64,000 bases of DNA. It comes from Octopus sinensis (Eukaryota). Numbering within the stretch: position 1 is the stretch's first letter; the number at the start of each line of letters is the position of its first letter. The stretch spans positions 53,196,001-53,260,000 of the forward strand of contig NC_043009.1 of the NCBI RefSeq assembly GCF_006345805.1, read 5' to 3'. Position numbers and translations under genes: made by a program. Shown one piece after another: positions 12,192 to 48,162 of this stretch. The notes under the pieces are model-generated. The model made no database searches. It was not told the origin of the DNA and saw nothing but the letters and a program-made list of their open reading frames with translations.

Positions 12192-12225
12192 ATGTCTGCA
12201 CAACTATTTGAACATATATTTATTG
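12192..12225 (+). CDS. Coding exon 1 of a 5-exon gene (MSAQLFEHIFI + phase 1); N-terminal half of the signal peptide
   Basis: ATG at 12192 with in-frame upstream TAG at 12135-12137; strong donor TTG|GTAAGT at 12226. The phase-1 join to 38860 builds a 23-aa signal-like peptide MSAQLFEHIFIVTFLLCIPVCHG. Short exon, 26.6 kb from exon 2, so the least certain exon. Confidence 0.65.
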
Positions 12226-12384
12226 GTAAGTTTGAATTTTCTTGATTTAGTTCTCTGTTTTTATATTATATTTGCATGTGTATTTAATTATTGGTGTATG
12301 TTCTTTTGTACGAAACAATACGATTATTAGTGTTTATTCCTGTTTAAAACTGAAGAGATTATTGATCTGTAGCCATTTCTGTGT

Positions 12385-15300
12385 GTCATATATATAATAT
12401 ATATATATATAATATATATATATATATATATAGTATATATATATGTATATGTATATATATATATGTAATATATTGTATTGTATATATATATATATGTATA
12501 TATATATATATTATATATTATATATATAATATGTATATATATAGTATGTATATGTATATATATATATATATATATGTATATGTTATATATATATCTATGT
12601 ATAATAGTATAATTATATATATATGTTATGTATATATATATATATATGTTATAATATATATATTATATATATATATATATATATTTAATCTATATATATA
12701 TATGTATATATATAGATATATATATATGTATATATATATATATATGTATATATATATGATATATATAGAGATATATATATGTAGAATTATATTATATATA
12801 GATGTATATATATATATATATATATATATATATATATATGTAATATAGATATATATATATATATATATATATATCGTATATATAATATATATATATATAT
12901 ATGATATATATATATATATAATATATATAATATATATATATATGTTATATATAGATATATATATATCTATATATATATATATATACTTTGATAGGTTCGG
13001 CCATTATTGGCCCAGGCCATGTCTAACTAATAGCACCACCATATAGATATATATATATATTATATATATATATTGGTATATATATATGTATATATATATA
13101 TGTATATATATATATATAATATATTATATATATAATATATATATTATATATATATATATGTATATATATATATATATATATATATATGTGTATATATATA
13201 TATATATAGATATATATATATATGTATATATATATATTATATATATATATATTATATATATATATGTATATATAGATATATATATATGTAATATATTTAT
13301 ATATGTATTAGGGTAATATATATATATGTATATAATATATATGTATATATTATATATATATATATATATATATGTATATATATATATATATGTATATATA
13401 TATATATATAGTAATATATATGTATATAGATATATATGTAATATATATATATGTATATATATATATATATATATATATATGTATATATATGTATATGTAT
13501 ATATATATATATATATATATATATATATATATATTATGGATATATATATGTATATATATCTGTAATATATATATATATATATATATATATATATATTATA
13601 TATATATATATATGTGTATATATATATATATGTATATATATATATTTAGATATATATAGATATATGTATATATATATATGTATATGTATATATATATATA
13701 TGTATATATATATATATGTATATCTATATATATATATATATAGTATTATATTATAGGTATATATATATATGTATATATATATATATATATATATACTATA
13801 TGGATATAATAATATTATATATGTATATATATATAGATATAGGTGTATATATATATTATAATATATGTATATATATAATATATATATATATATATATATA
13901 TGTAATATATATATATATATATATATATGTATATATATATAATATATATATATATAATATATATATATATATATTATATATATACATATATAATATATAC
14001 ATATATATATATATACATATATATACATATATTATATACATATATATTAATATATATATATATATATATATATATATGTATATATAGATATATGTATATA
14101 TATAATATATATATATATATGTATATGTATATATATATATATATATATGTATATATATATATATATTATATATATATATGTATATATGTATAATATATAT
14201 ATATGTATATATATATATTTAGAATTATCTATATTATAATATATAGATATATGTATATATATATATTATATGTATATATATACATGTATATATAGTATAT
14301 CTGTATATATATATATATGTATATATATATATATGTATATATATATATATATGGTATATATCTATATATATATATATATATGTAGATCTAATATTCTATA
14401 TGTATATATATATAATAATATGTATATATATATATATATATGTATTATATATATATGTAATATATGTATATTATATATCTATGTATATATTATATATATA
14501 TATGTATATATAGTCTATATATCTATATATATATGTATATATATATTATATATATGTATATTATCTATATATTAATATTCTATGTATATGTATATATATA
14601 TATAGTATATATATATATAGTTATATATATATATATATGTATATATATATATAGATATATGTATATATATATATATATTATGTCTATATATATATATATA
14701 TCTATGTATATATTATATATATATATATATATATATATGTATATATATATATATATATATATATCTATATATTATATAATATATCTGTCTATATATATAT
14801 ATCTATGTATATATATATATATTGTTATATATATCTATGTCTATATATATATATATGTATATATATATATATATATTATATAGATATGATATATATATAT
14901 ATATGTATATATATATTATGATTATATATATCGATATATATATATATATATATATATATGTATATATTATATGTATATATATATATATATATATGTATAT
15001 ATATCTATATATATTATGTATAATCTATATATATATAGCTATATATATGTATATAGATATATCATCTGAGATATAGATATATATGATATATATATATATA
15101 TATCTATCTATGTTATATATATATATATATGTATATATATATAGATATGTATATATATATATATATATATATATATATGTATATATATATATATATGTAT
15201 ATTATAATATATATATATATTATATATATATCTATATATATATATATAATGTATATATATATATATATATTCTGTATATATATATATATATATATATATA

Positions 15301-15450
15301 TGTATATATATATATATATATATATATATATATATGTATATATATATATATATGATATATATATATATGTAATATATATATATATATGTATATATATATA
15401 TATATGTATATATATATATGTATATATATATATATGTATATATATATTAT
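12385..15450. repeat. About 3-kb degenerate (TA)n tract at the start of intron 1
   Basis: Direct inspection; source of many YIYI ORFs. Confidence 0.95.
12984..13040 (-). mobile_element. Isolated 3' terminus of a CR1-clade LINE inside (TA)n
   Basis: ggtggtgctattagttagacatggcctg is near-identical to the 3' UTR at 2207-2273. Confidence 0.75.
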
Positions 15451-15457
15451 TTTCAAT

Positions 15458-16443
15458 ATTGGTGTCCAATATTGGTGTCACTGGAAAGCTGCTGCACTGT
15501 CCAATATTGGTGTCACTGGAAGCTGCTGCAATGGATCAAGTGCTTCCTCTCTAACAGAACCCAACATGTTGTAGTCGAAGGGTCAAATCCACCGCCAGCC
15601 AAAGTCAGCAGTGTTGTCCCCCACAAGCACTGTGTTGGGCCCACTTCTCTCTCATCATCTACATAAATGATATTACTGACACCATCAAACACAGCAACAT
15701 CAGAACCTTCGCTGATGATTCCAAGCTCCAGAAGGTCATCAATGGCGTGGATGACCGAATAAACCTTCAGTCAGACCTACTGGCTGTTGTCCAATGGCGG
15801 AAAAGAATAACATTTGCTAAATGAAGACAAATTCGAACTGATCCACTTTGGAAGGAGGACGCTCTGAACTCCCATACTCTCTTCCTTCTGGAGAAATTCT
15901 CATGGCATCCAACAACATCAGAGACCTGGGAGTAACAGTGGACAACAACATAAGCTGGGCTACACATATAAGCAGCAAAGTTGACATGGCCCGCAAATGT
16001 GTTCCTGGATTCTCAGAACCTTCCAGTCGAGAGATTCCCCGCTATTATCCTTCTCTTCTCCACTTTTGCCCGACCCCACCTTGAATACTGCTGTCCACTG
16101 TGGTCTCCCTACACAAAACAAAATATTATGAGAATTGAAGCTCCCCAAAGGTCAATCACAAAAAAGATAGATGGCATGTCAGACCTTGACTACTGGGGTA
16201 GACTAGAGAAGCTGAAATTGTAGTCACTCCAACGACGCCGTGAACGCTACATTATCTGTATGATGTGGAAAATATTCCATCAGCACTGTCCGAATGATGT
16301 TGGCATCACCTTCAAAATGCATCCAAGGCTTGGACCACGTGCCATCCGTCCACAACAAAAATCTAAATCGCATCACATAACGACAATACGGCACAACTAT
16401 TTCACCTCAATTGGACCCGCTCTCTTCAACATTACACCAGGAC
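15458..16443 (+). mobile_element. CR1-clade LINE RT/C-terminal fragment, frameshifted
   Basis: IYINDI, RTFADDSKL, IRDLGV, RPHLEYCCPLWSP, HPRLGPRAIRP match the 2207-4877 family; short 5' duplication at 15458-15535; (TA)n on both sides. Confidence 0.9.
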
Positions 16444-46410: not shown

Positions 46411-46974
46411 TTAAATTGATTCTCTCTGTGGATGAGAAAGATATCTCCTCCTCCTCCTTATTATTGCTATTATTATTATTATTATTATTACTATTATTAT
46501 TGTTACTATTATTATTATTACTATTACTATTATTATTACTATTATTACTATTATTATTATTATTATTATCGTTATTATTATTAGTAAGAAGCATGTGTTC
46601 AGATTGTTGTTTAGACCTTCATATATATATATATATATGTGTGTGTATGTGTTTGTGTGTCTGTTTGTCCCCCTAGCATTGCTTGACAACCAATGCTGGT
46701 GTGTTTATGTCCCCGTCACTTAGCGGTTCGGCAAAAGAGACCGATAGAATAAGTACTGGGCTTACAAAAAGAATAAGTCCCGGGGGTCGAGTTGCTCGAT
46801 TAAAGGCGGTGCTCCAGCATGGCCGCAGTTAAATGACTGAAACAAGTAAAAGAGTAAAAGAGTATATAAACATGATGCAAAGATTTGCCGCATATAGGTT
46901 GTGGGTCTGTGTTTCCAGTTAAAACTCAAATATAAAATATTGTGATTTATACACGAGCAAATACAGACTCTTTA

Positions 46975-47312
46975 TCGCATGGCTCAGTGGTTAGAGCATC
47001 GAGCTTACGATCGTGAGGTTGTGAGCTCGAATCCCGGACCGGGCTGCGTGTTGTGTTCTTGAGCAAGGCACTTTATTTCACGTTGCTCCAGTTCACTCAG
47101 CTGTAGAAATGAGTTGCGACGTCACTGGTGCCAAGCTGTATCGACCTTTGTCTTTCCCTTAGATAACACTGGTGGCGTGGAGAGGGGAGGCTGGTATGCA
47201 TGGGCGACTGCTGCTCTTCCATAAACAACCTTGCCCGGACTTGTGTCTAGGAGGGTAACTTTCTAGGTGCAATCCCATGGTCATTCGTGACCGAAGGGGG
47301 TCTTTACCCTTT
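46975..47312 (+). mobile_element. SINE family D (tRNA-like head, CORE-like gtgttcttgagcaaggcacttt domain)
   Basis: tggctcagtggttagag...gctcgaatccc; diverged copies at about 30085-30380 and 31806-32100. Confidence 0.82.
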
Positions 47313-47435
47313 ATTGTAAATATATAATTCTATTTAAAAAGAGGAAAACTTCAGTACACCCTGTCAGCAAACTATATTAAATTAGGCTCCAATTTCATAC
47401 ATTAAATTTGGCACTGACCTCATATTTCACATATA

Positions 47436-47647
47436 CGAGAAGGTGCTGAAAAGTTCCTGGCTTTGGGTAAAAGAAAATACAGAAGGATCAGTTAATTATG
47501 ATTTTATTCAACATATTCCCCTCTCAGATTCACACACTCATTGCAGTGGTCCTTCACTTTTCTAAGCCTTGTAGTGGAACTCGGAAGGTTGGGCCTGCAA
47601 TCAGGCCTTTCATGATACCTGTAAAGCCAGGAAATTTTCAGCACTCC
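47436..47647 (+). mobile_element. Mariner-type MITE
   Basis: TA-CGAG..GTGCTGAAAAGTTCCTGGCTTT / AAAGCCAGGAAATTTTCAGCAC terminal inverted repeats; further copies at 9285-9478, 34452-34679, 55382-55599. Confidence 0.82.
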
Positions 47648-47693
47648 ATGAAACTGAAACTAAACTTCAATTTGGTATTTTTTGCCTTTACAG

Positions 47694-48162
47694 GATATGG
47701 TCATACTTTATTGAAAATTACCTGACGAAACCATTAAGAAGCTGTTCAGAGACACTGGCTGAAGTATTTCATGAATATATAACTAACCAGCTTCCGAAGA
47801 TTTGTGAAGTAATCAAGAACAATGGCAGCACAACCGTTGACTCTGGCAGCAGCACAACCGTTGACTCTGGCAGCAGAAAAACCGTTGACTCTGGCAGCAG
47901 CAAAACCGTTGACTCTGGCAGCAGCACAACCGTTGACTCTGGCAGCAGCACAACCGTTGACTCTGGCAGCAGCACAACCGTTGGCTCTGGCAGTAACACA
48001 ACTAAACATGGTACTGTTGACTATGGCAGTAGCTCAAGTATTGAAAATCGCAGTAACAAAACCAATGCAAAACATCGTGGAACAAATGAAGGACTGAGGG
48101 TAGTTTTAAATACTTATCTCAGTTGGTTATTAATTCTAAGTATTCTTTTTGCTATTGTCTAA
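47694..48162 (+). CDS. Terminal coding exon 5: end of Cys lobe 2, Ser/Thr/Gly repeat stalk, hydrophobic C-terminus LSWLLILSILFAIV* (GPI-signal-like)
   Basis: Acceptor tattttttgcctttacag; 469 nt open to TAA at 48160-48162. Total CDS 912 nt = 303 aa + stop. Confidence 0.9.
47827..47994 (+). repeat. Coding 24-bp minisatellite, 7 units, encoding (STTVDSGS)-type 8-aa repeats
   Basis: Unit agcacaaccgttgactctggcagc repeated contiguously with few substitutions, in frame within exon 5. Confidence 0.95.

Follow-up and report, generated by a model that had tools for sequence, protein, structure and literature searches.

A five-exon gene in the O. sinensis window

We analyzed a 64,000-nucleotide (nt) stretch of the Octopus sinensis genome (contig NC_043009.1, positions 53,196,001 to 53,260,000; hereafter the window, numbered from its first letter). 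Its plus strand carries a five-exon gene, LOC115218299, which probably encodes a cell-surface glycoprotein with a Cys-rich head, a Ser/Thr-rich repeat stalk and a glycosylphosphatidylinositol (GPI) anchor. An earlier note on this DNA had described five exons with canonical splice sites joined in phase into an open reading frame (ORF) of 303 amino acids, and each of these details was reproduced exactly. The exons are 34, 136, 149, 124, and 469 nt long with incoming phases 0, 1, 2, 1, and 2. Three donors read GTAAGT and one GTACGT, the acceptors end in CAG or TAG, and a pyrimidine tract precedes each internal exon. The spliced product of 912 nt comprises 303 codons followed by TAA. The exons are as follows:

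12192-12225 (+), exon 1: 34 nt with the start codon; residues 1-11 (MSAQLFEHIFI) plus 1 nt, forming the first half of the predicted signal peptide; donor GTAAGT
38860-38995 (+), exon 2: 136 nt, phase 1; remainder of the predicted signal peptide (VTFLLCIPVCHG, 38860-38894), then the start of the Cys-rich head (C24, C35, C56)
40613-40761 (+), exon 3: 149 nt, phase 2; head residues 57-106 with C69, C77, C102 and the sequon NAT72
44466-44589 (+), exon 4: 124 nt, phase 1; head residues 107-148 with C114, C147 and the sequons NNS, NLS and NIT
47694-48162 (+), exon 5: 469 nt, phase 2; end of the head (C165, C185), stalk, predicted GPI-type signal, and stop codon TAA (48160-48162)

The gene had been thought to be hidden, but it is already annotated. 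Along its entire length the product matches the RefSeq protein XP_036364245.1 ("uncharacterized protein LOC115218299 isoform X1", Octopus sinensis) with 100% identity, and the annotated gene, CM016871.1:53,208,192-53,244,162 (35,971 nt), corresponds exactly to positions 12192-48162 of the window. Since the RefSeq model starts at 12192, exon 1 is also the first exon of that model. The full-length identity to an independently predicted protein and the matching gene span argue that the five exons are not a chance chain of ORFs, and the five-exon gene is almost certainly real. LOC115218299 is thus a genuine, single-copy protein-coding gene whose model is public; what is new here is how its architecture is read and how its repeat evolved. 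No other annotated gene lies within 10 kb on either side of it, and Rfam and tRNA scans of the whole window were empty. Exact look-ups of the product gave matches only in three genome assemblies, and the second RefSeq isoform, X2, was without a record.

The first intron contains long simple and duplicated sequences. A very long (AT)n microsatellite (12388-15447 and 16447-16874; about 3.1 kb plus 0.4 kb, with a GC content of 12-18%) starts 163 nt after exon 1. Further downstream, a tandem duplication of about 1.72 kb (29343-30783 and 31068-32503) contains four extended blocks of 202-300 nt each that are 100% identical between the copies, and both copies align to a single stretch of the Octopus bimaculoides locus (locus positions 22201-22986). 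This duplication either arose very recently or is an artefact of the assembly. Part of exon 2 is copied at 37088-37146, 1.7 kb upstream of the true exon; the copy is 58 nt long, and 18 of the 21 residues that it encodes match residues 25-45 of the protein. It has no convincing in-frame splice context and is also found in the O. vulgaris locus, at 29675-29728.

Architecture of the predicted protein

A Kyte-Doolittle scan detected only two hydrophobic segments, residues 5-26 and residues 288-303, the latter ending at the last residue of the protein. The hydrophobic core of the first, IFIVTFLLCIPV, is completed by exon 1 together with the start of exon 2 and is followed by C-H-G, which places small residues at positions −3 and −1. 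By the usual sequence rules the protein would therefore start with a signal peptide of 23 residues that is cleaved after G23. The 12 Cys residues are found at positions 17, 21, 24, 35, 56, 69, 77, 102, 114, 147, 165, and 185, and 10 of them would be left after this cut. Eight N-x-S/T sequons are present (NAT72, NNS116, NLS123, NIT139, NGS191, NTT249, NRS266, and NKT269). Our counts of mature Cys residues, sequons and Ser-Gly motifs (six DSG and one GSG) all agree with those given previously, as does the description of a hydrophobic end with no tail behind it.

The C-terminal 25 residues consist of the triplet N279-E-G, with Asn and Gly at the putative ω and ω+2 positions, a spacer of 7 residues, and 15 hydrophobic residues:

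48085-48159 (+), predicted GPI-attachment signal: candidate ω residue N279 (AAT, 48085-48087), E280 and G281; spacer LRVVLNT; tail YLSWLLILSILFAIV at the C-terminus

Signals for GPI attachment classically combine a small-residue triplet, a short spacer and a hydrophobic C-terminal end. O. sinensis, O. vulgaris and O. bimaculoides all have the same N-E-G triplet and the same YLSWLLILSILFA. By these rules the C-terminus is probably a GPI-attachment signal, and the suggestion of a GPI anchor that had been made for this protein fits the conserved triplet, the spacer and the 15-residue tail. The same protein might instead lack a GPI anchor and be held by a tail-less transmembrane segment or be secreted, for instance into mucus or the extracellular matrix, and residues 284-303 (VVLNTYLSWLLILSILFAIV) would be barely long enough to cross a membrane. 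We regard this as improbable: the hydrophobic run extends without interruption for only about 15 residues, ends at the C-terminus and is not followed by basic stop-transfer residues, and the conserved N-E-G stands at the canonical distance in front of it. The run thus appears too short, and its flank too poor in basic residues, for a conventional transmembrane anchor.

Between the two predicted signals lie the head and the stalk. The head was modeled twice with AlphaFold2 from a three-sequence alignment, with either the O. sinensis or the O. bimaculoides protein as the target. The mean predicted local distance difference test (pLDDT) scores were 36.3 and 37.7, and both models were purely helical with helices at similar positions. 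The head had been proposed to be two-lobed. A BLASTP comparison of residues 24-106 with residues 107-193 returned only chance matches of 8-9 residues; with no similarity between the halves and no usable three-dimensional model, this part of the description was not borne out.

Search for relatives outside Octopus

We queried 1.84 billion representative proteins exhaustively with HMMER, using a profile built on head residues 24-193. The search returned only the Octopus cluster and one bacterial protein. The latter (2800 amino acids, E 2e-4) is built of tandem repeats and was judged a spurious match. Word-indexed searches with the full protein and with a head-only profile gave Octopus proteins only, and a profile search of all sequences in the PDB gave nothing below E = 1. 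Foldseek, queried with the first AlphaFold2 head model (pLDDT 36.3), found no matches in the PDB.

Pfam was searched at E ≤ 10, and only four sub-threshold matches were obtained, all driven by the repeat: the T4 gp5 C-terminal repeat, the epiglycanin repeat, CFAP143, and Period_C. The first of these, the octapeptide β-helix of T4 gp5, reached 20 bits where the cut-off is 30.9; its Val/Gly register differs from that of the octopus repeat and the match falls wholly within the Ser/Thr repeat, and it was rejected. The epiglycanin repeat match was also below threshold (E 0.031; 14.6 bits against a cut-off of 27). No glypican, DUF19, GDNF/GAS1 or Ly6/uPAR domain was found at this E-value, at which very weak matches may be hidden by the speed filters of HMMER. 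By these searches, no member of the family can be detected beyond the genus Octopus.

The earlier note had judged the protein apparently unrelated to glypicans, and this held: no glypican was among the Pfam or exhaustive profile matches, and the PDB search likewise identified no known family. Its comparison of the core with DUF19 (PF01579) fared less well. The nematode DUF19 domain resembles the octopus head in being a secreted, Cys-rich invertebrate domain of similar size, but Pfam gave no match to it even at the permissive threshold, and the exhaustive profile search retrieved no nematode or other relative outside Octopus. Two further families were considered. The GFR-α/GAS1 proteins are GPI-anchored and have all-helical, disulfide-rich ectodomains with 10 Cys residues, and they served as a lead only; the Cys residues of the octopus protein are spread over about 167 residues instead of a compact domain of about 90 residues as in GDNF/GAS1 (PF02351), and no profile match was obtained. 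Ly6/uPAR (PF00021) likewise gave no Pfam match, and the all-helical prediction for the head would argue against a β-rich fold of this kind.

Orthologs within Octopus and the first exon

It had been said that no ortholog could be named, but two further species of Octopus have annotated ones. The O. vulgaris protein CAI9732003.1 (316 amino acids) has a head that is 98% identical to that of the O. sinensis protein and falls into one 90% cluster with both O. sinensis isoforms. The O. bimaculoides ortholog XP_014771029.1 (260 amino acids) is more distant, with 65% identity overall and 75% in the head, and forms a separate cluster. Exons 1-4 of the O. bimaculoides gene have the same lengths (34, 136, 149, and 124 nt) and phases as in O. 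sinensis, with splice sites essentially unchanged, while the introns differ in size (19.4, 3.6, 2.3, and 0.76 kb compared with 26.6, 1.6, 3.7, and 3.1 kb in O. sinensis). Exon 2 with 60 nt of flanking sequence on each side is 100% identical in O. vulgaris, and exon 2 is 92.6% identical in O. bimaculoides.

Any gene model of this type is most vulnerable at a short first exon, but here that exon is conserved. The O. bimaculoides exon encodes MAALLFQYIFI where O. sinensis has MSAQLFEHIFI, and both its length of 34 nt and its donor are unchanged. The situation in O. vulgaris is different. In a 50-kb locus taken from the O. vulgaris contig OX597826.1, 4.18 kb of unrelated sequence (10207-14390 in the numbering of that locus) replaces positions 10716-16867 of the window. 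The replaced 6.15-kb segment carries exon 1 and the (AT)n array, and the flanks on both sides are 98.5-99.6% identical between the two species. No copy of exon 1 was found anywhere in the 50-kb O. vulgaris locus. Either the two genomes truly differ in structure at this place, or the assembly is wrong.

The O. vulgaris annotation uses another 5' end. It contains an internal exon, corresponding to window positions 34104-34172 (locus positions 26699-26767), that encodes (D)CMFICLDPSGESLRFIPFLRLS and has the donor GTAAGT. This exon is spliced to an acceptor within exon 2 (CCAG|TA, at about 38883), and the resulting N-terminus has no proper signal peptide. The sequence of the internal exon is present in O. 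sinensis, where it is 99.3% identical to that of O. vulgaris and is not used in the RefSeq model. The comparison thus flags a likely 5'-end mis-annotation or a structural difference in the O. vulgaris assembly.

The Ser/Thr repeat and its evolution

The stalk is encoded in exon 5 by a tandem repeat that was delimited with Tandem Repeats Finder:

47825-48002 (+), tandem repeat: 24-nt unit, 7.4 copies, 95% matches; encodes G-S-S-T-T-V-D-S

Ser and Thr make up 48% of residues 191-276, and a stretch of this composition would ordinarily be expected to carry mucin-type O-glycosylation. The number of repeat units differs between species, with about 3-4 degenerate units in O. bimaculoides, 7 in O. sinensis, and 8 in O. 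vulgaris. Variation is also seen within O. sinensis. RefSeq isoform X2 (XP_036364246.1, 264 amino acids) lacks 117 nt, that is, 21 + 4 × 24 nt, corresponding to five repeat units (window positions 47823-47945). Alternative splicing was considered as an explanation and rejected, because no placement of the 117-nt loss results in GT-AG or GC-AG borders. Isoform X2 instead suggests polymorphism of a variable number tandem repeat (VNTR), that is, repeat-number variation, or slippage in transcripts.

The O. sinensis stalk has seven Ser-Gly motifs (six DSG and one GSG), and we compared the repeat units of the three species at the codon level. The O. bimaculoides units read G-S-(Y/S)-T-T-V-D-Y, with TAT (Tyr) at the last position where O. 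sinensis has TCT (Ser); all units of this species read D-Y-G, and Ser-Gly does not occur in them. The 3'-most and most diverged unit of both O. sinensis and O. vulgaris also reads V-D-Y-G, and the sequences indicate that this is the oldest unit in O. sinensis. In O. vulgaris, two units read D-S-D as a result of a GGC to GAC change. The D-S-G motif thus derives from a single Tyr-to-Ser change in one unit that was then multiplied by expansion in the lineage of O. sinensis and O. vulgaris. It is a recent by-product of the expansion of one variant unit and not a feature that the protein has conserved. The locus offers a clean natural case in which potential glycosylation sites were born by one nucleotide change (TAT to TCT) and then multiplied by repeat expansion.

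The Ser-Gly motifs had led to the proposal of a "mini-glypican", a GPI-anchored proteoglycan in which the D-S-G serines of the stalk are xylosylated and bear heparan or chondroitin sulfate. The position of these motifs, in a membrane-proximal stalk adjoining a GPI-type signal, is in keeping with this proposal. Ser followed by Gly with an acidic neighbor is the general signature of glycosaminoglycan (GAG) sites, and repetitive Ser-Gly is cited as enhancing heparan sulfate assembly (PMC13038410, and its reference 18). The same work describes xylosyltransferase sites as having no predictive consensus; acidic residues favor and basic residues lower the activity of XT1, GAG sites typically lie in acidic patches, and Gly substitutions at −1 and +1 are poorly tolerated (PMC13038410). 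In the octopus stalk, Gly is at +1 and Asp at −1, only one residue in each octapeptide is acidic, and Lys or Arg is present in two of the seven units, a context of the kind reported to lower XT1 activity. The motifs are also not conserved, given the D-Y-G of O. bimaculoides and of the 3'-most O. sinensis unit and the D-S-D of two O. vulgaris units. GAG attachment to the O. sinensis stalk is thus neither well predicted nor conserved as judged from these sequences, and because Ser-Gly is lineage-specific, a conserved GAG role is unlikely.

A comparison with glypicans (PF01153) leads in the same direction. The likeness is one of architecture only and consists of a signal peptide, a Cys-rich helical ectodomain, a membrane-proximal Ser-Gly linker and a C-terminal GPI signal. 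Glypicans have a core of roughly 500 amino acids with 14 conserved Cys residues, whereas the octopus head has about 167 amino acids and 10 Cys residues, with no glypican core recognizable by Pfam or profile search; its Ser-Gly sites are not conserved even within Octopus; and glypicans are found throughout the metazoa, in contrast to a family confined to one genus. Without homology to glypicans and with sites in a poor context, a proteoglycan is an unlikely reading of the protein, and the hypothesis is narrowed to a lineage-specific possibility. Of the two descriptions offered previously, a cell-surface proteoglycan or a mucin-like protein, the mucin-like stalk is thus supported by the Ser/Thr-rich repeats, and the proteoglycan is poorly supported.

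Constraint on the coding sequence

The O. sinensis and O. bimaculoides loci align colinearly over their whole length, which allowed the exons to be compared with the surrounding non-coding DNA. In the head, the ratio of nonsynonymous to synonymous differences per site (pN/pS, Nei-Gojobori) was 0.80, corresponding to a dN/dS of 0.79 after Jukes-Cantor correction. By exon, pN/pS was 0.97, 0.34, 1.09, and 0.96; exon 3 was the most constrained (0.34) and exon 4 the fastest (1.09). Not a single gap opening was observed in 579 nt of exon, compared with about 10 per kb in the aligned introns and flanks. From that rate about 5.8 gap openings would be expected in the exons, and we calculate a probability of about 0.003 of observing none. 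We also simulated 72 random substitutions 20,000 times. The products were free of stop codons in 4.9% of the simulations, retained all 12 Cys residues in 1.6%, and did both in 0.12%. The lack of gaps in the exons, the intact ORF and the retained Cys residues argue against neutral non-coding sequence. The reading frame and the splice sites are thus under constraint, as are the Cys framework, the signal core and the C-terminal tail, while most surface residues drift or diversify.

Exon 4 stands out in two comparisons. Its nucleotide identity to O. bimaculoides is 79.8%, compared with 92% for its upstream intron flank, and the head-coding exons of O. sinensis and O. vulgaris differ at just three nucleotides, all of them nonsynonymous and all in exon 4. 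This concentration of nonsynonymous changes is suggestive but underpowered.

A probable genus-restricted, mucin-like surface glycoprotein

Taking these results together, we favor with moderate confidence a genus-restricted, fast-evolving, GPI-anchored and mucin-like cell-surface glycoprotein. The precursor would enter the endoplasmic reticulum by means of its 23-residue signal peptide, and the mature protein would span approximately residues 24-279. Its head of about 167 residues is acidic and predicted to be all-helical, and its 10 invariant Cys residues presumably form five disulfides; several N-glycans may be attached to it. The head would be followed by a flexible Ser/Thr/Gly-rich stalk of octapeptide repeats, variable in length and expected to be densely O-glycosylated in the manner of mucins. 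The C-terminal signal would be cut at about N279 and exchanged for a GPI lipid anchor. The anchor would attach the protein to the outer leaflet of the plasma membrane, and the glycosylated stalk would hold a disulfide-locked head off the surface. Because the head evolves at a near-neutral rate and the stalk is a length-variable VNTR, a role in surface recognition, adhesion or coat formation is likely, and a conserved signaling co-receptor is not.

The protein in this form would belong to the GPI-anchored mucin-like glycoproteins, a functional class and not a homologous family. Examples are the small GPI-anchored sialomucins of mammals and the surface mucins of protozoa. Like them, the octopus protein evolves rapidly and has a signal peptide, a GPI signal, and Ser/Thr tandem repeats whose copy number varies; by sequence rules these three elements are found together in one polypeptide. 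It differs in having a sizeable Cys-rich and, according to the models, helical head, and its GSSTTVDS unit is unrelated in sequence to theirs. If this architecture is correct, it would illustrate a cephalopod route to lineage-restricted surface molecules, by which an orphan disulfide-rich head is combined with an expanding mucin-like VNTR stalk and a GPI anchor. The practical value of the finding is modest.

Several observations weigh against the mucin-like glycoprotein reading. The signal peptide and the GPI signal were assigned by rule and not by a trained predictor, and the n-region of the predicted signal peptide contains neither Lys nor Arg. The AlphaFold2 models are too poor for folds to be compared. 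At the syntenic position of the O. vulgaris assembly, the segment with exon 1 is missing. We found no paper that names any accession of the gene or its orthologs, and a topical literature search gave no relevant result. The exons are 87.6% identical to those of O. bimaculoides at the nucleotide level while well-aligned intron flanks are 88-94% identical; since exon identity is not above that of the flanking introns, selection on most residues is weak. Finally, the dN/dS of the head (0.8) is not significantly different from 1 (p = 0.49).

The rate estimates, the exons being no more conserved than the introns, the missing exon-1 segment in the O. vulgaris assembly, the restriction of homologs to one genus, and the lack of literature and of a transcript record in the collections searched would also suit a young, barely constrained locus, recently arisen or decaying, with a product of little function and an annotation that reflects ORF persistence; we find this quite doubtful, as the ORF, all 12 Cys residues and indel-free exons have survived a nucleotide divergence of about 12% (a joint chance of about 1e-5 to 1e-6), the splice sites, signal-peptide core and GPI tail are conserved, and two RefSeq isoforms imply, in our experience of Gnomon output, that transcript alignments exist.

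The glycoprotein reading can also be taken further. The head might represent a new disulfide-locked, all-helical octopod fold on a length-polymorphic GPI stalk, with the surface encoded by exon 4 under diversifying selection and a function in species- or self-recognition (for example on gametes, epithelia or sucker skin). The GAG sites newly gained in the O. sinensis/O. vulgaris lineage might in addition be functional, making it a proteoglycan that originated de novo within the genus. We consider it a long shot that all of this holds jointly.

Other features of the window

A block rich in CA and ACACAT simple sequence at about 25900-28400 is strongly asymmetric between the strands, with a GC skew of −0.60 and an AT skew of +0.39, and contains long, spurious ORFs rich in His and Thr. 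An assembly gap of exactly 100 N is located at 57364-57463. On the minus strand, positions 2302-5039 hold the remnant of a retrotransposon without long terminal repeats (non-LTR), resembling a long interspersed nuclear element (LINE), with matches to Exo_endo_phos_2 (E 2.5e-13) and RVT_1 (E 9.7e-10) in neighboring ORFs.

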